Below are positions 6,715-60,244 of a stretch of 64,000 bases of DNA, in pieces; position 1 is the first letter of the stretch, and every line of letters begins with the position of its first letter. Both the position numbers and the translations under genes were made by a program. The notes under the pieces were generated by a model that saw only the letters and a list, made by a program, of their open reading frames with translations, did not search any database and was not told the origin of the DNA. The DNA is taken from the NCBI GenBank assembly GCA_965649825.1, contig OZ287708.1, positions 639,411 to 703,410 of the forward strand. The letters are read 5' to 3'. This DNA comes from Penicillus capitatus. Its lineage: Eukaryota; Plantae; Chlorophyta.

Positions 6715-8158
6715 TCAGCTGGTCGATCTCTTCGACCTCGTCAGTCGAGACAACAGGCCACAGAAGAACGGTTTGCGAGTGTATTGTTCAACTTCTGCCT
6801 CTCTATAGACGATCGCTGTGGCAGGAGTGATCGACCCGCCGCTCTGTTCTTTGTTGATAATGTCAGTGGTCTGATCGCGCGGAATCTTTGCCGCAGAGAT
6901 ATTGTCTTCAGCAGGAGGTGTCTTTGGCATCACCATGACATCTGATTCGTCATGTCCGTAGCCAAGGCGCACGGCTTCCTGTGCCGCCTGACGTGCGACT
7001 TCTGCAATTTGATTCGGGTGCACACGATGTCTTTCTTCGGCGATCTGTTCCTGGCGGCGCATCGCTGCGCTGGCGGCCAGAACGGCCAGTTCATACGCTC
7101 GGCGACGGTTTGGACGGACTTCTGCTCCAAGACCGCGTCGAATAGCAAAACTTGCGGCATCGCGAGCGACCGTCGCAAGAAACTCTTTGCGTTCCGTCAT
7201 CTGACCTTCTGCGACGGCCTCATCGGCGAGACCACGTTGAATGGCCGCCCCGGCTGCCATGCGGGCCACCTCAGCAACCAGTTCAGACGGTGGCTCAGGG
7301 TGATCGATCAGTTGATGATCGATCGCAAACTGTGCCACTTCCTGAGCCGTCTTGAAATCGTTCTCATCGACATCCGCTGGACGCTTTGCGCTTTTCTTGA
7401 GTGCAGCCTCCGCTGCTGACTTCGAAATGTCGGACAGCGTTCGCAATGTACTGACGGATGGTCTTTCAAATCCGTGTCCCTGTTGCAGAGCCGCACTTGC
7501 CACCAAGGTCGCCACTTTCTGACGTTCGTGATCGTGCTCGGCATCGTGCACCGCACGATCTTCCGCAGCTAGGAGCTTCTGAATCGCAGCACTGGCGGCA
7601 TGTCTCGCCACCTCGGCCAAATCGTTAAGCGTTGGATCGTGACGCTCATCTGGCACAAGTTTACGCTGAATCGCAGCATCTGCTGCCGCTTCCGCTAAGG
7701 ACGATACCTGAGGACAAAATCTTTTCACTCTTTTGCCGGATACAGGTATCACACACTTTCTTTAGGGCGGAGGTATCGACAACGTCTTCTCCAAAATGGT
7801 GTTGCATAGCAGAACTCGCAGCCAAAATCGATAATTCCTGCAGTCGCGATTTCTGTTGGTCCGTCACGTTGGGTTCGCATTCGTCTCGTGCCATTCCTTT
7901 TTGTATGGCAGCCGAGGCCGCGTCCAGAGCAACCGCATGCAATTGCGCAAAGGTCACCGGCGCCAAGTCTTCTCCCTTAATCAGGCCCTTCTTTACAGCC
8001 ACCTCCGCGACCTCTTTCGCCACGGAATTGCGCCTCTGTAATAACCCGAAGTCGACTTCCGTCTCGCTGACGTCTTCTCCAAGTCCGTGCTGAATAGCGG
8101 CGCCTGCAACACGCGCCGCCAGTTCCGCTCTCTGATGCTTCCTCTCTTCTGTCTCCAT
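6715..8158 (-). CDS. Uncharacterised Ala-rich helical repeat protein (~464 aa, 13 repeats)
   Basis: ORFs 7661-8158 and 6715-7752 join in frame across a 49-nt GT-AG intron (7708-7756; ALKK|VSSLAE). The motif [ED]xAxxAAxAA[ILM][QR]xG[LM] recurs. Confidence 0.8.
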
Positions 8159-8340: not shown

Positions 8341-10040
8341 TCAGAATACTCCAGGAATGATCATGAATGGCACAAGACTACAGTATGCCGCCCAATAATC
8401 GCCATACTTGACCCTGCACCTTTCGTCATCTCGATAAGCGCGATCCAGTAGCAGCAGTGTCAAGTAGACGACATAAAAGTATTGCAATCCCTATGACAAG
8501 CGCACCCTGTTACCGCATAAGTATCGACAGGCACCTCACGTTGTTGAATAACCCAGTTGCTGTCCACAAGAATGACGCGAGAATTTCTGGCACATAATGA
8601 AAATGCCGAGCGACGCCCCACCTAAAGTCGCAGATAATGAACATTGCTGAAGAAGACATCGATCGCACCATCCTGACGCCAAGAGTAGTGTCTGCTTCTG
8701 ACCGTTTCCTGTTTCGTAAACCGCATTGATCTTGCGTGGCGGTTTTCCCCAGATCAATAACTTCCCATTCAACTGGCGGAAAGTCTGTGTCAATGAGCAC
8801 ACAATGGCTCTCGGCCGTCACACTCTGCGGAATTGTGCTAACCTGGCGTTGACGATCGACGTCGTAGTTGACATAGATGCACAACAGCCCACATATCAAG
8901 ATTGAAGCAGCCAGGGGTAAGCCAAGCTTCACAGGGTTCTTCACCAGATAGAGAGCTGGTGATGTGTATATGCCAGGTACCCAAGTAAGACATCCCCAGC
9001 AAAGATAATATCCAGCTCGATCGTGTGCAATATCCATCGAGCTCCAGTAACCAGTTTCCCACAAGAAGAATTTGAAAACGTAGATCTCCATCAGAGCCAC
9101 CGAAATCACCATAGAGTCAGCAACGTAGCCATACATCTCGTATTGTTTGGCTGCATAGCAGAGAATGAGGACGGCCCAACTCATCATACCCATACGACAG
9201 TTTGTCCATGTCTTGATATCAAACCACTTACCGATTCTTGGATACAACTCCATCCCTGAAGGCATAAAGTGTGACAAAGTGAGTGAGAGCTAATAAGAGA
9301 GGAGTGTGACAAACCCCAATAAAAATCGTAAACAAAGCTTCCAGTGGAGCCAGAGTCAGAAGAGGAAGGAAATAGATGCCCCTTGATGTGCAACAATGCA
9401 CACAGTGCCAAGCTGAAGATGTTCAGCGCGCTCAGAATCTCTCCAAACATATCGTAGATCCGAGCAGGCGAGAAAGCATTGCTCCACCAGCCAATGGCAA
9501 ACAGCAGCAGAGTCGCCAGCAATGACTGGACACCATTTGCCTAGAAGCAGCCACATATTCCCATGTCTCAAAACCGTACTCATATCTCGACGTTCTACCG
9601 TGTATATCGGCGTGTTGCCCTTTGGCGTAATGGGTCCATTCACACGCTTTCCAGGCAAAAATAGTTGAAAGGCAGCCTGGATCAAACCAAAAATACCGAT
9701 GGCGAATACTGCCTCTCGACTAGGCAGCGTATAGAAGGCGCGCAGGAACGCGAAACCTTCCTCCTGCACCTTGGTATAGAAGTCCGTCACGGATCCGGCG
9801 AATTGAGTATGCACCACACATCTGCAGCAACCGTTAAGACCCACCCACCAATCTCAAAAGAGATCTGCCTTACACAAGCATCGTAAACATAGGAGCGCCG
9901 AACATCAAGGCGAAGACGCCTGTCAGTGCAAGGGTCTCTCCCTTGATCCCCGTGATACCCCAGACGGTCGGGCGTCTTCGTGCGCCATGGTTGTCAGCCC
10001 ACGTCTTTGTCGCCATGTTCGCGGCGGTCATCTTCGCCAT
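8341..10040 (-). CDS. DHCR7: 7-dehydrocholesterol / sterol delta-7 reductase (DWF5-like, ERG4/ERG24 family), multi-exon
   Basis: Signature MDIAHDRAGYYLCWGCLTWVPGIYT; also GPITPKGNTPIYT, ARHFHYVPEI and the C-terminal LDRAYRDDERCRVKYG...IIPGVF*. Confidence 0.93.
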
Positions 10041-10042
10041 CG

Positions 10043-10999
10043 ATGCAAATGGCACTGTTCAATTTGCTAAGTTGTATCGCCTTGTGTTTTCTCCCTCACG
10101 TTTTGTATTACTACGCGACACCACTGTGAGACAAGTCTTTGGCCGGAAGCTCGATCGGCAGACGTGTTTGTCAGGGCGGAGTTCGGTGTTCTGAGAACTG
10201 TTGGTCAAGCTTTGTTCTTTAATGCTGCAACCTCTGCTTTTAAAGTCTGAATGATTAAGTAGATGATAATTGAGGATTCGTATGTAGGTCGTCCTGCTTG
10301 CATGTCTGCTTCCTGGAACAGAACTGACGAAGCAGGATTTTTGGCAGGTGCCGTCGTGTTCATTCTAGCACTGCTGCCAAGAGATGACTGGTTGGTTGGG
10401 CAGGACGTGGCCCAAGTGATTGTCGGCTTGACAGATTTGCTGGGGCTGTACTTAGCACTGACACAGAAATGGACACACAAGAGCATTTCCAACGAGCACC
10501 GATTTCAAGCGGTGGGATTGGGATGGTCGTTCGGTGACAGTCTGTTGCGGCGTTTGATGCCCATGTGGGTCACAGGCTTCACTCCTGAATTCTCCATCGA
10601 CAATGTCATCGAAGCAATTCGATCCAACATCGTCATGGTAATCACCAATCGCACCATCTCAGTCTATGGTGCTAACCAGGGATGGTACAGGTACACTCCA
10701 TAACCTTCGCCGCCGTCGGTACACTTGTTTTCAACAAGCGCATTCGACGAGGACCGTTTGCTGTCGTCTACAAACTCGTCTTACTCCTCCTTACCCTTCT
10801 GCCACTGATCTTTACGTGCGTGAGATCCAACAGCCTGATGATGTAGATGGAGATGGAGGCTGGCCATGATGACAGGTATGTGGAGAAATCTCGGAATTGG
10901 ACGGGATTTCACGCTCTGGGCTTCGAAGCCATCGTGACGATCGTTTCAGCACTCATCTGCTGGGAGCTGAACACAAATGCCCAAAAGAAAACGACATAA
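10043..10999 (+). CDS. TMEM147: Transmembrane protein 147 (BOS/multipass translocon subunit), multi-exon; start ATG at 10043 or 10049
   Basis: Spliced N-terminus MALFNLLSCIALCFLPHVLYYYAT resembles the family MTxFHFFNC...PHxVYY start. The core TDLLGLYLAL...QAVGLGWSFGDSLLRRLMPMWV...EF..NI is present. Confidence 0.85.
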
Positions 11000-11157: not shown

Positions 11158-11898
11158 ATGAGTCATGAACATCCAACGCTGAGCCGCACGTCGGCGCCTC
11201 CCCCTCAGTTGGCGCGTTCAGAAACAGAGGAGTCGCAGCGCGATGGATATTCTTCGAGGCGCCTGCAGCGAACGTCAACATACTCGGACCTGACACGGGA
11301 ATCTCTCCGAGCATATCTAGAGAAAAGAGGAGCAGGTCTTCAGCGTTCTTCCGTCCGAGCAGCGCATGAACTGGCTCGTCGCAGCGAACATCCATTAGCC
11401 TGCACGGTCAGCGTGCGTCTTACCGAACGCAAAACGGGAGGACATGTCTACTACAAATACGACGGCTCACGTTTTCAGCATGCTGATGCCACAGTCAAAG
11501 TTGTTAAAGGAATCACGTATGATGTGCACGTGGTTGTCAAACCGTCCATCGACATCGTCGGTAACGTCCTGTATTTTCGAAGCATGACTGCTCCAGATGA
11601 AGAGCGCTCCAGTGTCATTTACGTCGACAAAAACCGCAAAGACTCGAAGGAGTTGTTGGGAACATGGAAGTGTGACTATGAGATTGGAAAGAAGGGACAG
11701 CGCTCAGAAGTGGTCATCACCGGTCATCTGGCGCATTTCGGAGAGTTTGCTGTGCCTGTGATGACGAAAGTCTATGCACAGGGTCAGAAACATGCCGTTC
11801 AGGGATTCAAATTAAGATGGGTTGTCTTCGAATTGAAGCGCAAACAAGACATCCACACGGGCATGTGTCAGTTAGACTCTGTACGATACATGAGCTAG
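11158..11898 (+). CDS. CNRIP1: CB1 cannabinoid receptor-interacting protein 1 (CRIP1a/CNRIP1) family protein, intronless, with a Ser/Arg-rich N-terminal extension
   Basis: VYYKYDGSRF...TVKVVKGITYDVHVVVKP and GKKGQRSEVVITGHLAHFGEFAVPVMTKVY parallel CNRIP1 VFFKVDGQRF...TIKLLTGSSYKVEVKIKP and [30 protein letters not shown] (recalled from memory). Confidence 0.72.
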   Translation: MSHEHPTLSRTSAPPPQLARSETEESQRDGYSSRRLQRTSTYSDLTRESLRAYLEKRGAGLQRSSVRAAHELARRSEHPLACTVSVRLTERKTGGHVYYKYDGSRFQHADATVKVVKGITYDVHVVVKPSIDIVGNVLYFRSMTAPDEERSSVIYVDKNRKDSKELLGTWKCDYEIGKKGQRSEVVITGHLAHFGEFAVPVMTKVYAQGQKHAVQGFKLRWVVFELKRKQDIHTGMCQLDSVRYMS

Positions 11899-11927
11899 AT
11901 CTCTCCCGACGATGAGGAAGCAAAATA

Positions 11928-14068
11928 ATGGCGGACACGTGTTACGATTTGGATGTACCTCTCGCGAGACGCGCGAAACGACGCGAAAAGCGAAGGAGTG
12001 CGGAGGGAGATATCGTTATTATCGACAACGGCTCGTATGAATTGAGAGCTGGTTTCGGCGGCGGCGATGCGCCCTGTCTACGTTTCCCCAATCAGCTGAT
12101 TCGACCTCGGGCTCGATGGTCGACAGATTTCGAAACGGTGGTGGGTGAGAGTCACTTCAATGTCAAGGGATTCGATTTTGGAAGGGCGGCGGTTCGGAGT
12201 CCCTTCGATGCCAATGTCGTCGTCAATTTCGACACTCAAGAAGCCATTCTCGATTACGCTTTTGATCGATTGGGATTCGAAGGTAAAGAATGAGCAACGG
12301 CGCAATAGAATGTGATGCACATCTCCTCTGTCGGTGTAGAATCGATGGAACGCTGCAGATTGGTCATGACAGAGTGTCTCCTCAATCCAATCTATTGCCG
12401 AAAGACGATGACGCAGTTGCTGTTTGAGGGATACGGCATATCTCATGCAGCATACGTCCCGGATGCATTGGCAGCATTTCATTGCAACCGGCACATCGGT
12501 CGTTGTCCGTCCAATGCTGTGCTCGTGCATTCTGGTCATTCTGCCACACATATTGTGCCGATCGTTGACGGACAGGCTCATCTGCTCTATGCACAGCGAT
12601 CCAAGATCTGTGGTGTGATGGACGCGATCGTGTGTCTGTTTTGTGATCTGAAGGGTTGGGTGTAGGTTCTCAGGCAACGACGCATTTGCAACAACTCTTG
12701 ACGATCCATAATCCTCAATGTGCTGCATCGGTCAACAAACATGTGGTGGAATTGCTTAAGGAGCAATGCACGTTCTGTTCGCTAGACTATGTGCGTGATG
12801 TGACAGTTGCTGGAGATTGGAAGTCATCCAGAGGCCTGGGATTAAAAGTCCTATTGCCAAAGAGCATCGCTGGCGCTGGCAGTGTCCAAGAGAGTTCTGC
12901 CAACAGAGATGTTGACAAAGCAATGAAGGCAGAAGAGCAGCGCATGCGATTGAAAGCTATGTCTCTCAAGAGAAAACAAAAGATGATTCAGGAAAAAGAA
13001 GAACTACTCATCTATCTCCGAGACATCGAACAGCAGGTTTCTGTCATTCGATGCAGCAGAGCAGCTCAATGGATGGTCTTTGGATGATCTTAGATTTCTA
13101 TAGCACAGGACCCGGATGTCATCAGTGAGTTGTTGGAAGATGCAGAAGTGAGCAGCAAAGAAGGATTACAGAAGTGCATTGACACGACTGTGGTATCTCT
13201 GCAAAAACTAAAACAGCCTGAGTCGGTCGCAGCTCCAGCCTCCACACAGAGCATATCCAATCCGCCGCCAGCTGAAGATATCGATGTGCTCAGGGAACGA
13301 TATCGAGCGATTCGAGAACGACTCGATCATCGAAAACGCAGTCGCTTGAGCCAAGAAGGCATATCTGGGGCATCTTCAAAACGCATTTCGTCTGCCCAGC
13401 GCCGACGCATGAAACTCGTGGCTGAGGCTGCTGCTCAGGAAGACGAGGATGATTTTGGCGCAGATGACAGGGACTGGGATGTCTACAAAGAGATGGACAC
13501 AGCTGCTTGCTCTGTGGCCGAACTCAACCGACAGGACGAAGCAGAACTGAAAGAGCTTCGTGAAAAGCTGCAGCAGTGTGGTGAGGACATGGAAGAAATG
13601 CCCTCCGTCGAAATCGGGCCTCCGCAGCTCATGGGGCAGCTGGATGAAAACCATGTGTACCTCTCTGTGGAGCGTCTGCGCGTTGCGGAGTTGCTGTTTC
13701 AGCCAAGTCTGATGGGCATCGATCAGGCTGGAGTTCCAGAAATCGTGTCGCGTGTCTTAAAGAGTCTTCCGCCGGAAGTGGTCTCGCAAGTGGACGAGAC
13801 CCTCTTGCTTTGTGGAGGGAATGCTGCTTATAAAGGCCTCGATGCGCGACTTGCAGCAGAAATGTGTTCTCTGAGACCATTCGGTCGTCCGATGAACGTC
13901 ATCACAGCAGACGATTTCTTCTTGGACACCTGGAAGGGGGCAGCGCAGTTTGCAACATCAGACATGGCCATGCAGTCGAACATCTCTCGGGCAGAGTATC
14001 AAGAAGTGGGAGCCGGAATCGTAGAAAGAAAACGCATTCCCTTTGTCTATTACGCTTCAGATCCTTAG
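11928..14068 (+). CDS. ARP5: Actin-related protein 5 (INO80 complex), multi-exon
   Basis: IIIDNGSYELRAGF, SPFDANVVVNFDTQEAILDYAFDRLG, EDDFGADDRDWDVY, VERLRVAELLFQPSLMGIDQAG, LDTWKGAAQFA. Confidence 0.92.
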
Positions 14069-50576: not shown

Positions 50577-53500
50577 ATGCTCAACGTTTCGAGGGCGCAC
50601 ATCGAAGACGTCATTGCGCAGCTGGCGTCCCAGACGCTGTTAGATGTTGGTCGACCCGTCGATCTCACTCGGACCGATGGCGCCATCGATTATCTCTTGC
50701 TTACCGCGCCGAGTGGCAAAGCTGTCGTCTACGAAGTGGCAACCCCAAGGGATCTGCATCGGCTTTCTCTTGTTGAATTGGCGCTGACGACACGGTGAGG
50801 TTAGATGTTATGGTGGAGGTAGCAAAGAGACAGGATGTAGGGAAGCGGAGCGGGTTTATGTATTGCCAAAGGGGCTGCAAATCTATGATGCGCTGTTTGG
50901 ACTCGATTTCCAGACGCTCGCCGATCTTTCGTGCGAATCGCTTGAGACTCTCAAAGAAGACGCCCAACAGCAACGGACGTGCGAGGTGCACAATAATCTC
51001 ATCGTATGGCTGGAAAACAGTCAGATCGTGGTGGTGCACATTACGGGAACCTACTGTGCCCGATAACATCGATCACTCTCACACATTGTAACGACTGTCG
51101 ATGTGTGTGCAGTTGAGAAGGTATGCTGTTCCGTCATATCGAATTTTACAGAAACAGAAACGGTGAGAAAGTGTGACCAGGGAGATTGAAGCACCACATG
51201 TTCTGCTGTTATCTAGATGCGCGTTACAACGCTGTCCACAGTGGACGTGGATGTGGGTCCTCTGTGTCAATTGGTACTCAGTGGGCAAAACCTAGGCGTC
51301 GTACTTAAGAGTCACTGCCGTATGGTGGCTGCACGGTCTTCTCACACGATTCAGATATTTAAACTCGAAAACTCGCAACTAACACATATTGGCTATGTTC
51401 GACATCCTGGTGTTCGATTAACGGATATGCAGTTCTGCCCTTACTCTTACCCAGAGCTGACCTATTGTTGCTCCGATGGATCGATCCATGCTGTCCGACT
51501 AGACAAGACGTTTGAAAATCTGCCAATGCCACTCCACTCGACGGAATGGGCAGCACGTAGTGATCTGCTGGAGGACGAAGAGACAACAAAGTGTCTGTGC
51601 TGTTACGGGATGCATCCAAGACAAGTGCTGTTTTCCCTGAAGAACAGTCTTTCTTCTGTGCACGGAGGATCGGGTGCGTTGTTTCGCAGAGAGGGATATC
51701 CATCGTGACGTTGAGTGTATACACAGGCACTTCCATCGTGAGTGAGGTCTTGTTGGAGTATGATGAGAGTGAGAGTATTCAGAGTTTGCAGACAACACAG
51801 TCGGCTGTGGATGGATCTACCATGCACGATCCATTTCTTCTGGCCGTCATGACGAACAAACGCATCAGATTACACGACCTGCGCACACTTCCGGACATTC
51901 TGCTGTCCTGGGAACTCGTTTTTGATTGTCGACTACCGGACATCATGCATTTTACGCTCGAACCAGATATCTTTTCAGGCGGGAACGAAGAAGGAACGGA
52001 GATGCAGACCGGTCTCACGCATGTGCGTGTGGGTCGCATTGTTTATGGGAGCAGAACATCGGGGGACATGTATCAGACGTTCTTTCGAATTGGCGATCCT
52101 CAGATGGCGGTGCACATAACGCCCACCAAGACATCGCGCCGGCGATACCGAATTTCGTTTGAGAATCTGGACAAGGCAAAACGACAGTTACCTGTTGTCC
52201 ACACACGTTTTCGCCAGTATCTGGATATTCCCTATCTTCTCTGCAGCAGCCTTGCTGAACACGATGACGATATTCACAGCAGAGCTGTCCATCTCGCCAG
52301 AATTGCACGGCGGCGGCATGCATTGGATCCTCAACAGAAAAGACTGTTGCCTCTTGAAGAAATGCGCCAATGGAGAGAACTGTTGCAACATTCCGAAGAC
52401 ATCTGTGGATCTGGATGGATCTCACTGCCACACATCGATGGTTATATTCGCGGAGTGCTCATCCGGATGAACGCTGTCGGCGATCTCATTATTCAACCGA
52501 TGACAACGTGGTCACGCGAACGTCCTAGGAATGTTCGCCGCCACTCTGTTTCGCAATGGAAGGTGCTGCAAGAAGAGGATCTGGATTTGAGTGATGCATG
52601 TGACTGGAGAGGAGCCGATCGGCGAATTGACCTCTCCAAGTTCGATTTAGGCATCCACATTCCATCAAGGCGATGGGATGCCGTTGATCGGGAAGACGTC
52701 ACAGAAGCAGCAAAGTTTCGATGTGGAATTCCTTCATATCTGCTCAGCAGTCACATCAAGCATTCTATTGAATTATCGCATCCAGATGTTGTACCGAGAC
52801 GGAAGCAAAGTCTGCAGAGAATGGCAAGAGGGTCGCAGAAAAAGACGCCCTGTTTGCCAATGAATCTTCACCGAAAGCATTTGCAGAAATACGATTCCGC
52901 AAAACCGTTTCCGGTCTCAGACAGCAGCAAAGTGTTTTGGGCAGAAGCAGATCTTGCTGCCGTACTTGGCGGCGACACAGGGACAACGCTGTGGAGCTGT
53001 GTAGAGGATCTCAAGTGGAAAATCATGTCCAAGATGCAAGGAGGCGACACACGATCTCCCAAGAATCCCGAATCCAAAGGCGATTCAGAACGAGAAACAG
53101 AAATACAGGCAATTGCCATTAAACCGTGGAAATCCGATGCCAAAACCTTTCGACTTATTCAAAGAAAGTGCTGCAAGATGCCGGAGAAAAGAGTACGGGC
53201 TTTAGCATCTCTGATCAGCTCAAATCATCCTGTGTTTTCACCGTCAGACGAGCAGATGATGAAAGAGGTTCTTCAACAGCACGCAGCAACATCTGCTGGA
53301 ATTCGACAGACCCTTGTTAAATCAAGACCACCTTCGTACATCCCGATGGACAATCTGTGTGATGCGGAGAAGAAGGACAAGTGGGAATATGGAAGTGACG
53401 CATCCAATGGCGCAGATGTTGTTTTTCTCCCAGTGTGGACAGCGGAGAGGGGTGGAGTGGAGGCCAGAATCACATTTGAAGCTCCTTGCTACCAACCATT

Positions 53501-53627
53501 CATGGAATTCCCTCAGACAGAAGAGGGAGAGGCAGGCATCCAAGAGATGCTGAATCTGTGGCGAAACGAATGGCAAGAAGGGCACCAGGGAACGATGCAC
53601 GAGCACATCGAATCTGATGCATCATAA
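50577..53627 (+). CDS. TAF1C: RNA polymerase I TBP-associated factor TAF1C-like beta-propeller protein
   Basis: 678-aa terminal ORF plus upstream exons; VAARSSHTIQIF, DMQFCPYSYPELTYCCSDGSIH, CCYGMHPRQVL and RLHDLR...LLSWE are typical of the TAF1C propeller. Confidence 0.6.
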
Positions 53628-57830: not shown

Positions 57831-59297
57831 TCAGTCCCCCAAGACGACAGGTGTTTCCTCGAAAAGCCGGACGCCAATTCGAACGTGTCGTGCATTTGCT
57901 TCGCTGTACTTGGCGGCAACGTCTTCATTCGGCATGAGAATATCGTCAGCGATTGGCACTCCTTGCTCCTGAACGTATGAGGCCACAGACTGATCTCCTG
58001 AGACGGCACCGGCTTGAAGAGCAGCACCCAGAGCAGCAGATTCGGGTTCCAAAGGAAACCGTAGAGGTACTTGGAAAGCATCGGCAATGATGCGTCTCCA
58101 TAAACGATTTTTGGATCCTCCTCCCACAACTCTGAGCTCCTTGATCGTCATACCCAGCGCTTCCATCCTCTTAGACCCGTTCAATACCGTGAATGTTGCC
58201 CCCTCTAGAGCAGCGCGATAGATCAATCCCGGACGCATTGTGCCAGGAGTGAGGCCGTATAGGACGCCTCTTGCATGCGGCCAATTTGGTGTCCTTTCTC
58301 CAGTGAGGTATGGCAGAAAGCTCACTCCTTGACACCCGATCGGTTCTTTTTCGGCGAGGGCAGTCAACTCCTCGTGGCTGAGGCTGAATCCTCGCTTCAC
58401 CTCTTCCACCACTCCAGTACAGCTGATAGTGCAGACCAGTGGCATCCATCGATCCGTGGCATCACAGAATTCACACACAACACCCGTCTTATCAAGAATG
58501 GGTTTCGCCGAGCAGCCAAACAGACAAGCAGAAGTGCCCAGAGAGAGAACGACAGTCCCATCTGTGACCGCACCGGCACCCAGGGCACTCATCATGTTAT
58601 CTCCTGAACCGGGCGAGACGATGACATCTGTCGACAGACCGAATGCCTCTGCCGCTGCAGGTGTCAACCTACCGATCACTGCATTTGAGTCGACAAGGGG
58701 AGGAATCTTGTCAGCCAAAGAGGGATCGACCAGATCGAGCACCTCCCGATCAAAACACTTTTTCAAAATGTCCAGACCTCCAACTCCACTGGCATCTCCA
58801 CACTCCATGCACATTCTCCCTGTGAGCCTGTAGTTGATATAATCATGTGGCAGTAACACATGTTTCAGTCGGGCGTAGTTCTCAGGCTCATTGTTCTTCA
58901 TCCACAGAATCTTCGTCAGTGTAATGGAAGGGACCATGACATGGCCGAGTTTCTCTGAGAGTTCTGCCGCTTCTTTGCTGCTCTCCACATCGCACCATAG
59001 TTTTGCAGGTCGAATGATTTCGTTTTCCTCATCGAGAGCCACGAGGCCATGCTGCTGTCCACTCACTCCAATGCCCCGAATGGCACTCCGATCTTCAATT
59101 TTCTCAAGAATACAATGCACTGTCTCCTGACATGCAGCAAACCATGTCTCCGGGTGTTGTTCTGCCCGTCCCGGGACATCGGTAGAGAGCAATCCGTAGC
59201 TAACAGAGGCACGTGCCACTACCACTCTGTTTTCGTCGTCATAGAGGATCGCTTTAGTGCCTTGTGTTCCAACATCTAACCCGATCAAGAGTGGCAT
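57831..59297 (-). CDS. xylB: Xylulokinase (FGGY family), bacterial type, intronless; alternative upstream ATG at 59351
   Basis: IGLDVGTQGTKA; GIGVSGQQHGLVALD...IRPAKLWCD; LLPHDYINYRLTG; GDNMMSALG; FLPYLTGERTP; VVGGGSK...WRRIIAD; ESAALGAALQA. Confidence 0.92.
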   Translation of the reverse strand: MPLLIGLDVGTQGTKAILYDDENRVVVARASVSYGLLSTDVPGRAEQHPETWFAACQETVHCILEKIEDRSAIRGIGVSGQQHGLVALDEENEIIRPAKLWCDVESSKEAAELSEKLGHVMVPSITLTKILWMKNNEPENYARLKHVLLPHDYINYRLTGRMCMECGDASGVGGLDILKKCFDREVLDLVDPSLADKIPPLVDSNAVIGRLTPAAAEAFGLSTDVIVSPGSGDNMMSALGAGAVTDGTVVLSLGTSACLFGCSAKPILDKTGVVCEFCDATDRWMPLVCTISCTGVVEEVKRGFSLSHEELTALAEKEPIGCQGVSFLPYLTGERTPNWPHARGVLYGLTPGTMRPGLIYRAALEGATFTVLNGSKRMEALGMTIKELRVVGGGSKNRLWRRIIADAFQVPLRFPLEPESAALGAALQAGAVSGDQSVASYVQEQGVPIADDILMPNEDVAAKYSEANARHVRIGVRLFEETPVVLGD

Positions 59298-59413: not shown

Positions 59414-60244
59414 ATGGAGACAGCAGTAGCTAAGGCTCCATGGGACATCCTTGCGCTCGATATCATGACATCCATGCCCAAATCAGAGAATGGATATCGA
59501 GCAGTGCTCGTGGTCGTGGACACGGCGTCCCGTTGGTTGGAGTTGTTGCCCTTGCGTTCTGATGACCCTCTTGAAGCCGCCTTTGTTTTGGAACAAAGCG
59601 TGTTTCTGACATTTGGCCCATCCACGTCCGTTCTCTTGCCAAGCGAGAAGGCCGAATTCGAGAATCCTTTTCCAAAAATTCTGAAGAAATACGATGTGAA
59701 GCCAGGCAACCTCGACCACGCTAACCCTCAAGTGCGAACGATGGTGAGCCGTTGCCTCAAAGAAGCAAAGCGAGACCTAATTCTGATGAAACGTGAATAT
59801 CCGACTGTTCCGTGGGATCATTTGCTGAAACATGTGTCTTACAAACACCGCACACGTCGTCATGTCAGTATGACATCCACCCCTCAGAAACTTGTCTTGC
59901 CATTTACGCCTATCGAGAACACAGAGACGACGGTGGATGAAGTCATGGCCGATGACGAAGATTGTGTCGATCCGTCGGCATCCGTCTCTATTCGAGCACA
60001 ACGGGATCATCGATTGGCTTTAGAGCAGGAACGCCATTGGTTTAAGTCGAAGCTGGAGAGCTTTGGGGGATTGTCTTTGACACTGAAAGCAGAGGCCATG
60101 AAGTCCAAGATGCTGCTGGATCATTCCGCATCGGTGACGCTCGATGGGAAGTCTCTTACATCTCCATCAAAGGCAAAAGCCATGAGAAAGAAGACCAAAC
60201 ACTGCTGGAGAATTGCTTCCCTGGGCGGACGACCTGTTATGTGA
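59414..60244 (+). CDS. Retroelement integrase core (rve)-derived protein, catalytically degenerate, intronless; no flanking element
   Basis: PWDILALDIM...ENGYRAVLVVVDTASRWLELLPL...FG...NPQ...WDHLLKHVSYKHRTRRHVSMTSTPQKL follows the Ty3/Gypsy rve pattern. The second catalytic D and the E are not conserved. Confidence 0.78.
   Translation: METAVAKAPWDILALDIMTSMPKSENGYRAVLVVVDTASRWLELLPLRSDDPLEAAFVLEQSVFLTFGPSTSVLLPSEKAEFENPFPKILKKYDVKPGNLDHANPQVRTMVSRCLKEAKRDLILMKREYPTVPWDHLLKHVSYKHRTRRHVSMTSTPQKLVLPFTPIENTETTVDEVMADDEDCVDPSASVSIRAQRDHRLALEQERHWFKSKLESFGGLSLTLKAEAMKSKMLLDHSASVTLDGKSLTSPSKAKAMRKKTKHCWRIASLGGRPVM

Follow-up and report, generated by a model that had tools for sequence, protein, structure and literature searches.

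Do two genes whose start codons are separated by only a few nucleotides form a functional unit, or have they simply been pressed together by genome compaction? This question is raised by a locus in a 64,000-nt stretch of DNA of the chlorophyte Penicillus capitatus (referred to below as the window), in which two nuclear genes, DHCR7 (minus strand) and TMEM147 (plus strand), are arranged divergently, head to head, with conserved ATGs 8 nt apart. The closest named relatives of this alga are Bryopsis and Ostreobium (order Bryopsidales). The first-pass annotation of the window had placed both starts inside one palindrome, with no intergenic DNA left, and had proposed an obligatory antisense overlap as well as the coupling of a sterol reductase to its biogenesis or stability partner. 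When the junction and the ATG positions were re-read, all of its coordinates proved correct.

Identity of the two genes

The spliced models of the two genes are as follows.

8341 to 10040, minus strand: DHCR7/DWF5-type sterol delta-7 reductase gene (458 aa, seven exons)
10040-9874, 9821-9599, 9540-9315, 9255-8843, 8784-8669, 8621-8540 and 8490-8341, minus strand: DHCR7 exons
10049 to 10999, plus strand: TMEM147 (DUF2053) gene (229 aa, six exons)
10049-10125, 10175-10244, 10288-10347, 10404-10637, 10691-10815 and 10876-10999, plus strand: TMEM147 exons

The names originally given to both genes stand, on the basis of Pfam matches, homologues and PDB alignment. The DHCR7 protein matches Pfam PF01222 (ERG4_ERG24) with an E value of 2.8e-79 and contains the full-length domain (residues 36-458, corresponding to profile positions 7-432 of 432). 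Its best homologues are 7-dehydrocholesterol reductases/DWF5 by name (55-60% identity), the closest being DWF5/7-DHCR of Bryopsis, Ostreobium and Coccomyxa (57-60%). Nearly all named proteins among the best 120 matches are annotated as 7-dehydrocholesterol reductase, DWF5 or sterol reductase, and share 50-60% identity across >90% of the DHCR7 length, whereas the PDB relatives are delta-14 reductases only and far weaker (E 1.3e-59 and 1.3e-40). In a neighbour-joining tree the protein clusters with the Bryopsis and Ostreobium DHCR7, with a bootstrap value of just 52. As judged by these similarities, the minus-strand gene is nearer to delta-7 reductases than to C-14 or C-24(28) reductases, and the predicted activity of its product is the NADPH-dependent reduction of the sterol C7-C8 double bond.

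All DHCR7 introns are 47-59 nt long and bounded by GT..AG. Comparison with the related assembly L003 and the more distant L005 revealed that the exons are mostly better conserved than the introns and that alignment gaps are located in introns; the exception is the N-terminus of the L005 protein, which is 7 codons shorter.

The TMEM147 introns (43-60 nt) are likewise GT..AG throughout. The protein gives a full-length match to Pfam PF09767 (DUF2053; E 2.9e-38), with profile positions 1-155 of 160 corresponding to residues 2-160, so that profile position 1 falls at residue 2. Residues 1-205 of mammalian TMEM147 (PDB 7tm3 chain 6) align with residues 1-210 of the algal protein (E 1.1e-11), residue 1 of the model starting at 10049 being paired with residue 1 of the mammalian chain. 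The alignment with the 229-aa proteins P0003 (Bryopsis) and P0004 (a second alga) is free of gaps, and the lengths are 229 aa in the window, 229 aa in Bryopsis and 224 aa in mammals. TMEM147 is a subunit of the ribosome-bound multipass translocon (PDB 7tm3, 7tut, 6w6l), within the TMEM147-Nicalin-NOMO (BOS) complex.

Start codons and the spacer between them

The junction between the two genes comprises the following elements.

10014 to 10031, minus strand: downstream in-frame DHCR7 ATGs (A at 10031 and 10016), not conserved
10038 to 10045: palindrome CATCGATG, consisting of the DHCR7 start codon (CAT, 10038-10040), CG (10041-10042) and an upstream in-frame TMEM147 ATG (10043-10045)
10041 to 10048: spacer CGATGCAA, the 8 nt that separate the conserved start codons and constitute all of the "intergenic" DNA
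10043 to 10045, plus strand: upstream in-frame TMEM147 ATG, which would add Met-Gln; present only in the window, L002, L003 and L004

Conservation points to 10040 as the DHCR7 start, this being the sole conserved ATG among the in-frame candidates, and the frame is closed by a stop 6 codons further upstream. Neither 10031 nor 10016 is likely to be the start codon, since these ATGs are not conserved (L003/L004 have Val and Gln codons at these positions, and only one ATG is present in L005). For the plus-strand gene TMEM147, the same kind of comparison places the orthologous start at 10049 (MALF...) and not at 10043. The 10049 start is common to Bryopsis, P0004, the Pfam DUF2053 profile and mammalian TMEM147, whereas the 10043 ATG is missing in L005 and Bryopsis, and in L005 an in-frame TAA directly precedes the TMEM147 ATG. 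This leaves a conserved spacer of 8 nt. The near-zero spacing reported earlier is thus correct, as is the distance of 2 nt to the 10043 ATG within the window, although this ATG is not conserved and the gap shared with relatives is the longer one.

Could the starts nevertheless be mis-assigned, with the true ATGs located downstream, or with unrecognised upstream exons, and a normal intergenic region present? Alternative in-frame ATGs do exist, two for DHCR7 (10031 and 10016) and one for TMEM147 (10043), the best Kozak-like context (A at -3, G at +4) being that of 10016. However, the non-conservation of the two minus-strand candidates, the stops upstream of 10040 and of the L005 TMEM147 ATG, the agreement of the TMEM147 N-terminus with residue 1 of its orthologues, and the location of the next in-frame DHCR7 Met within the first transmembrane segment make such an error very improbable. 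Moreover, even the most distant alternative ATGs (10016 and 10049) have just 32 nt between them, as the first-pass annotation had also calculated. Downstream start codons and upstream coding exons are largely refuted by the lack of ATG conservation and by the upstream in-frame stops.

CATCGATGCAAATGG is identical in three further independent assemblies (L002, L003 and L004), which also have the same letters in the spacer. In L005, a more distant relative with a protein identity of about 67%, the spacer is again 8 nt long, with a different sequence, TTTTGTAA. The idea that misassembly or a deletion confined to one strain produced the junction, and that the pair is non-functional as seen, has practically nothing to recommend it: the same junction is found at about 85-93% nucleotide identity (by segment) in L003/L004 and at 93-100% in L002, the spacing recurs in the far more divergent L005, and both genes have intact reading frames and canonical splice sites. 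An assembly artefact is refuted by the L002, L003 and L004 junctions together with the L005 spacing, and nothing was found in its favour.

The palindrome, which had been singled out as a notable feature, is incidental. It does not extend past 8 nt, is missing from L005 and Bryopsis, and any arrangement of the type CAT-NN-ATG is palindromic when NN is self-complementary (4 of the 16 dinucleotides). It is a by-product of two ATGs on either side of CG and is not significant in itself.

The lack of intergenic DNA is not special to this pair either, since very small spacers are general in the window's genome. Only 29 nt separate the stop codon of a CNRIP1-like gene from the ATG of an Arp gene (24-31 nt in three relatives), and 63 nt lie between the xylulokinase stop and the HAUS5 ATG. 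Such compaction implies that transcription units intrude into their neighbours.

Conservation and possible significance of the pairing

The divergent pair was found in four genomes of the window's clade. It is also present in Bryopsis sp. KO-2023 (L001), where an ERG4_ERG24 gene on the minus strand and a DUF2053 gene on the plus strand have their ATGs at 7842 and 8001, respectively, with 158 nt between them and a central TATATATA in the intergenic region. In Ostreobium, sequence resembling TMEM147 exons 1 and 2 lies divergently upstream of DHCR7. The HMM match of this remnant is weak (E 0.0076, versus >1.7 at four control loci), and the copy looks decayed (ACG in place of ATG, and a frameshift) beside an intact DHCR7; later TMEM147 exons were searched for at this locus and not found. 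At the loci checked in Coccomyxa, Nannochloris and Chloropicon the two genes are not linked. The linkage is lineage-restricted, and its absence from these three algae means that any selective benefit is not general. The genomes of Nannochloris and Chloropicon are also compact, yet lack the linkage. When JGI metagenome contigs were scanned with the TMEM147 alignment, 126 pattern matches were obtained, and tblastn confirmed none of them.

In tblastx analysis, DHCR7 and TMEM147 were the only window genes present at the Bryopsis pair locus, and xylulokinase was the only gene that the Bryopsis xylulokinase locus had in common with the window. In total, one of the five adjacencies compared between the window and Bryopsis is conserved, namely DHCR7-TMEM147; the four broken ones are too small a sample of background synteny for statistics. 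Because these four are not conserved, the pairing is probably not a chance adjacency. With regard to linkage being absent from relatives, which the first-pass annotation took as the mark of chance, the picture is divided: Bryopsis and the four clade genomes have the pair, and Coccomyxa, Nannochloris and Chloropicon do not.

An ancestral origin does not in itself imply a function. The adjacency may be functionally meaningless, with two unrelated ER-membrane housekeeping genes sharing an ancestral bidirectional promoter and persisting together only because any break within such a short spacer would destroy the two of them; the human interaction between their products would then be a coincidence noticed afterwards. 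We give this reading somewhat less than an even chance. The absence of linkage in three green algae and the decay of the Ostreobium TMEM147 copy while DHCR7 stayed intact are in its favour, and tight spacing is indeed general (158, 162 and 215 nt in head-to-head pairs of Bryopsis, 29-63 nt in tandem in the window). TMEM147 serves many clients as a multipass-translocon subunit, and it is thus not very improbable for the literature to connect it with some neighbour of its gene. On the other side, the xylulokinase/UDPGP pair of Bryopsis, equally tight and head to head (162 nt), was not kept in the window, and tightness alone therefore did not preserve pairs. The breakage of all four of the other adjacencies (4/4) also speaks against this reading, as does the published interaction, which in the account given in PMC8508377 is specific to ERG4/ERG24-type LBR and DHCR7.

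The same source, in summarising Christodoulou et al. 2020, bears out the statement of the first-pass annotation that human TMEM147 binds the sterol reductases LBR (through its sterol-reductase domain) and DHCR7, and reports that DHCR7 transcript and protein fall when TMEM147 is silenced (PMC8508377). The protein families involved are the same two as in the algal pair: TMEM147 of the alga can be aligned with its mammalian counterpart from end to end, and its reductase matches DHCR7/DWF5 at orthologue level. The human link exists at the level of protein-protein contact and of expression, whereas the algal link is known as genomic adjacency alone. In humans, TMEM147 and DHCR7 are located on separate chromosomes.

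The pair may have been kept because TMEM147 helps to make or stabilise ERG4/ERG24-type reductases. The stronger version of this idea, that the pair has been a co-regulated unit since a Bryopsidales-type ancestor, with TMEM147 as a dedicated biogenesis or stability factor of these reductases, we regard as distinctly unlikely. If it were true, algal genome architecture would independently corroborate an interaction known only from human cell culture, and the collapse to 8 nt would have created an obligate 5'-5' antisense overlap tying together the expression of both mRNAs. If the linkage has been selected at all, it would provide comparative-genomic support, from a distant lineage, for TMEM147 and DHCR7-type reductases working together, and would make their relationship testable outside mammalian cells. 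If the pairing is merely frozen ancestry, it is an ordinary outcome of genome compaction.

Bidirectional gene pairs that use one promoter region are widespread in animals, fungi and plants (e.g. H2A-H2B and COL4A1-COL4A2), the classical promoters of this kind measuring roughly 100-1000 bp. The algal pair resembles them in (i) its head-to-head orientation, (ii) its very short shared upstream region, (iii) the retention of the arrangement in a distant relative (Bryopsis), and (iv) the reported physical interaction of the products. Bryopsis, with 158 nt and the central TATATATA, has the ordinary bidirectional form. The window differs in that its 8 nt separate start codons, not transcription start sites, and in that no dedicated promoter DNA remains. 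The pair is a new example of an already known kind of arrangement.

Transcript leaders and promoters

With so short a spacer, the first exon of each gene would have to accommodate any longer leader and any upstream core promoter of the other.

9874 to 10040, minus strand: DHCR7 exon 1, which must house any TMEM147 leader in excess of 8 nt and any core promoter upstream of TMEM147
10049 to 10125, plus strand: TMEM147 exon 1, which must house any DHCR7 leader in excess of 8 nt and any core promoter upstream of DHCR7

Two out-of-frame ATGs are present on the plus strand of DHCR7 exon 1, one at 10015 (-34; window and L002 only) and one at 9987 (-62; in all four genomes), positions that speak for a short TMEM147 leader. 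Upstream of the DHCR7 start, the minus strand has an ATG-free stretch of 263 nt in the window and L002, and of 228 nt in L003/L004 (background probability about 0.01). As a sign of a longer DHCR7 leader this stretch is suggestive only, because it is not conserved in L005 or Bryopsis, where it extends for just 42 and 57 nt, respectively. The identity of DHCR7 exon 1 to L003 (0.856) is no higher than that of the other exons, and comparison of both first exons with L003 and L005 revealed no nucleotide constraint beyond coding, i.e. nothing that would mark an embedded promoter. The whole window was also scanned against Rfam and for tRNAs, with no hits.

No transcript contigs of the window's clade were present among the protein-search matches. 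Those of other species, L006 (TMEM147, with an 84-nt leader) and L010 (DHCR7, with a leader of about 160 nt), carry no recognisable antisense coding sequence of the partner gene and are uninformative for the window.

Antisense overlap would be avoided if both mRNAs were leaderless or nearly so, with start sites within the 8 nt of the spacer or at the ATGs themselves. Long leaders would be burdened by upstream ATGs, those at -34 and -62 in the case of TMEM147 and, in L005, those at -42, -74 and -84 for DHCR7 and at -27 for TMEM147, and the retention of the 8-nt spacing in divergent relatives also fits with such starts. We nevertheless consider leaderless mRNAs unlikely: the ATG-free stretch of 228-263 nt in four genomes suggests a longer DHCR7 leader, and the 29-63 nt between tandem neighbours imply that transcription units overlap in this genome in any case. 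Translation on very short leaders has been described for Giardia and for TISU-type mammalian mRNAs; to our knowledge, diverging RNA polymerase II starts within 8 nt, with leaders of 0-8 nt, are without precedent in green algae.

The explanation that we favour, and hold to be somewhat more likely than not, is that compaction followed pairing, with transcription initiating within the partner gene. The pairing would be older than the compaction, the 158-nt intergenic region of Bryopsis representing an earlier form, and in the window's lineage the shared promoter region would have been reduced to 8 nt. Because only these 8 nt are left, RNA polymerase II would have to assemble on the first coding exon of the partner, and perhaps also on its first intron. 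Most likely, both genes would be served by one nucleosome-free initiation zone with the two ATGs at its centre. We infer that each transcript would begin inside exon 1 of the partner, by a few up to a few tens of nucleotides, so that the leaders would be short and the transcripts would overlap briefly, head to head and in antisense, and that the two genes would be co-regulated by construction.

From the sequence comparisons, overlap of the mRNA 5' ends and functional co-regulation are plausible. The "obligatory" sense-antisense overlap and the selection for functional coupling put forward in the first-pass annotation go further than this: if the combined leaders measured no more than 8 nt there would be no overlap.

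In compacted eukaryotic genomes, transcripts begin or end within neighbouring genes; a 2005 PNAS article by Williams et al. reportedly described such overlapping transcription in microsporidia, in cryptophyte and chlorarachniophyte nucleomorphs, and in Giardia. The spacers of the window (8, 29 and 63 nt) are similarly too short for promoters and UTRs. Unlike these parasites and reduced endosymbiont nuclei, the window appears to belong to the nuclear genome of a free-living type of green alga, with spliceosomal introns of 43-60 nt in large number. A divergent ATG gap of 8 nt in such an intron-rich genome offers a clean natural case for studying RNA polymerase II initiation without dedicated promoter DNA.

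The codon-usage map of coding potential was too noisy for first exons, and one further head-to-head pair was measurable in the window. Xylulokinase and an rve-like ORF lie head to head there, 116 nt apart, as measured from a homology-supported start.

Structure and identity of the divergent genes

Two genes transcribed from opposite strands were modelled in the window:

10040-9874, 9821-9599, 9540-9315, 9255-8843, 8784-8669, 8621-8540, 8490-8341, minus strand: DHCR7 gene, seven exons, spliced model
10049-10125, 10175-10244, 10288-10347, 10404-10637, 10691-10815, 10876-10999, plus strand: TMEM147 gene, six-exon model

The DHCR7 model contains six GT..AG introns (47–59 nt), and its spliced product (458 aa) is matched across almost its full length by the Pfam domain ERG4_ERG24 (E 2.8e-79). 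The best database matches are green-algal and land-plant proteins annotated as 7-dehydrocholesterol reductase or as DWF5 (50–60% identity), the top three listed being those of Bryopsis sp. KO-2023 (60%), Ostreobium quekettii (57%) and Coccomyxa (60%); delta-14 sterol reductases of solved structure gave far weaker matches. On the basis of these similarities, we accept the minus-strand gene as a DHCR7/DWF5 orthologue. In a neighbor-joining tree, the encoded protein groups with those of Bryopsis, Ostreobium and two transcriptomes, with a bootstrap value of only 52%.

The TMEM147 product (229 aa; introns of 43–60 nt), two small exons of which were placed by comparison with the Bryopsis protein, aligns without gaps to its counterparts in Bryopsis and a second alga, both also 229 aa long. 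It is matched by Pfam DUF2053 from profile position 1 (E 2.9e-38), and its residue 1 is aligned to residue 1 of mammalian TMEM147 in ribosome-translocon structures (PDB 7tm3, 6w6l). Also in view of these structures, we take TMEM147 to be a member of the translocon-associated BOS complex.

Comparison with related genomes revealed that the exons of both genes are generally more conserved than the introns. Alignment gaps are confined to introns, except at the DHCR7 N-terminus of L005 (a more divergent relative carrying the same gene pair), which is 7 codons shorter. Both models are consistent with this conservation pattern. The introns of DHCR7 and TMEM147 (11 in total; window 8341-10999) are without exception 43–60 nt long with GT..AG ends, a very narrow size range that accompanies the extreme gene density.

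Start codons and the spacer

The first-pass annotation had placed the two ATGs 2 nt apart within a palindrome. Re-reading of the sequence confirmed all of its coordinates: CATCGATG occupies positions 10038-10045, DHCR7 (minus strand) has in-frame ATGs whose A lies at 10040, 10031 or 10016, and those of TMEM147 (plus strand) are at 10043 and 10049. The TMEM147 start common to orthologues is 10049 (MALFNLL...). The ATG at 10043 would extend the protein by Met-Gln only and is missing from L005 and Bryopsis; in L005 an in-frame TAA lies immediately 5' of the TMEM147 ATG. In L003 and L004, two other assemblies of the window's clade, the counterparts of the 10031 and 10016 ATGs are Val and Gln codons, which leaves 10040 as the only conserved DHCR7 ATG; an in-frame stop is located six codons 5' of it. 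CATCGATGCAAATGG is identical in three related assemblies.

The conserved starts, 10040 and 10049, therefore leave the coding sequences 8 nt apart (10041-10048): the near-zero spacing that had been proposed holds, with 8 nt in place of 2 nt. The spacer of L005, whose TMEM147 is ~67% identical to that of the window (exon nucleotide identity ~55–77%), is also exactly 8 nt long and differs in sequence (TTTTGTAA). The palindrome, previously considered a notable feature, is incidental: it is restricted to genomes with the extra 10043 ATG and not extended beyond, and for ATGs 2 nt apart, 4 of the 16 dinucleotides yield a palindrome.

Short spacers and transcription of the pair

A tiny spacer is not special to DHCR7 and TMEM147. 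Only 29 nt separate the end of a CNRIP1-like gene (11898) from the ATG of an actin-related gene (11928; window 11896-11930), and this junction measures 24–31 nt in three relatives (L002 9637-9667, L003 9634-9666, L005 9653-9678), which would imply overlapping or polycistronic transcription of the tandem genes. On the minus strand, 63 nt lie between the xylulokinase (FGGY) stop codon (57831-57833) and the HAUS5 ATG (57767), a further very short spacer between tandem genes. The distance from DHCR7 to its downstream neighbour is 182 nt, that from TMEM147 to the CNRIP1-like gene is 158 nt, and in the one other divergent pair measurable in the window, xylulokinase and an rve-like ORF, the ATGs are 116 nt apart. 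Given such short spacers, transcription units in this genome would commonly extend into their neighbours, and the 8-nt spacer is the extreme of this general trend.

Several other coding regions of the window deserve mention. The gene downstream of DHCR7 (6715-8158, minus strand) encodes a product rich in 'A-x-x-AAS/GAAIQ-K/R-GL'-type repeats, with no Pfam match; it is conserved in L005 (60–80% identity, tblastx). The longest open reading frame (51564-53624, plus strand, 687 aa) has positive coding potential, yet relaxing the Pfam threshold to E 0.1 gave no match. The coding potential of the rve-like ORF (59414-60244, plus strand) is good, and its match to the integrase core is weak and below threshold (E 0.0035); it may represent a transposon integrase that has been domesticated or is decaying. 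In Bryopsis, xylulokinase is paired head to head with UDPGP instead.

The 8 nt between the DHCR7 and TMEM147 ATGs leave two possibilities: combined leaders of no more than 8 nt, or transcripts each starting within the first exon of the partner. A search for transcripts from the window's clade yielded none, and in the contigs of other species (TMEM147 in L006, DHCR7 in L010) no antisense coding sequence of the partner was recognisable. On the plus strand 5' of TMEM147, one out-of-frame ATG, at -34, occurs in the window and L002, and another, at -62, in all four close genomes; they argue for a short leader. On the minus strand 5' of the DHCR7 start, there is no ATG for 263 nt in the window (10041-10303) and L002 and for 228 nt in L003 and L004 (background probability of such a 228–263-nt stretch in four genomes, ~0.01); L005 and Bryopsis have ATG-free stretches of only 42 and 57 nt, respectively. 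No extra nucleotide conservation was found in the first exons of either gene in comparison with related genomes. These indirect clues to leader length are mixed. The best reading, we infer, is a single initiation zone common to both genes, with the two ATGs at its centre; leaders would be short on both sides, and the transcripts would overlap head to head by a few tens of nucleotides. DHCR7 and TMEM147 would therefore be co-regulated by construction.

Conservation of the pair and its possible meaning

In Bryopsis sp. KO-2023, annotated ERG4_ERG24 (458 aa) and DUF2053 (229 aa) genes are also arranged head to head, their ATGs 158 nt apart. At the centre of this intergenic region (L001 7843-8000) is a TATA-like palindrome, CCCATATATAGCGC, as would be anticipated for a bidirectional promoter of the ordinary type. 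A 3-codon upstream ORF (MYS*) lies 57 nt 5' of the DHCR7 ATG. By tblastx, this 18-kb locus of Bryopsis has no genes in common with the full 64-kb window other than DHCR7 and TMEM147, and the outer neighbours of the pair differ. As a control for background synteny we used the Bryopsis locus of xylulokinase (window 57834-59297, minus strand), located on the same 11.4-Mb contig. Xylulokinase alone is common to this locus and the window; its comparably tight divergent arrangement with UDPGP (162 nt) is not kept in the latter. DHCR7-TMEM147 is the one adjacency kept among the five compared.

In O. quekettii (L007 9500-10200, CAJHUC010000951.1), DHCR7 is preceded, in divergent orientation, by unannotated sequences similar to the first two exons of TMEM147 (family HMM E 0.0076, versus >1.7 in four control loci). 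Where the start codon would stand they read ACG, a frameshift is present, and no TMEM147 exons after exon 2 were found at this locus. This sequence may be a decayed copy, and lends weak support to ancestral pairing. The annotated O. quekettii DHCR7 (521 aa) begins 63 codons 5' of the start that orthologues have in common (MTAKGDKEGQAW...) and is probably over-extended.

The first-pass annotation had regarded absence of linkage in equally compact relatives as a sign of chance adjacency. The linkage is present in Bryopsis and the window's clade; in Coccomyxa, Nannochloris and Chloropicon, TMEM147 was not found within 10 kb of DHCR7; the genomes of the latter two are compact.

The interaction of TMEM147 with LBR and DHCR7, on which the proposed functional coupling drew, was cited accurately: according to PMC8508377, TMEM147 interacts with LBR (through the sterol-reductase domain of LBR) and with DHCR7, and its silencing lowers DHCR7 transcript and protein levels. 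The pairing in Bryopsis and the window's clade fits selection for co-expression; a frozen bidirectional promoter accounts for the adjacency equally well, and both the restriction of the pairing to one lineage and the possibly decayed Ostreobium copy call for caution against a strong functional claim. The original observation holds with a spacing of 8 nt, and its interpretation is partly supported. Conserved divergent gene pairs in compact genomes where transcription units intrude on one another are an already known kind of arrangement; the present pair is noteworthy for its extreme spacing and because an interaction of its two products has been reported in humans.
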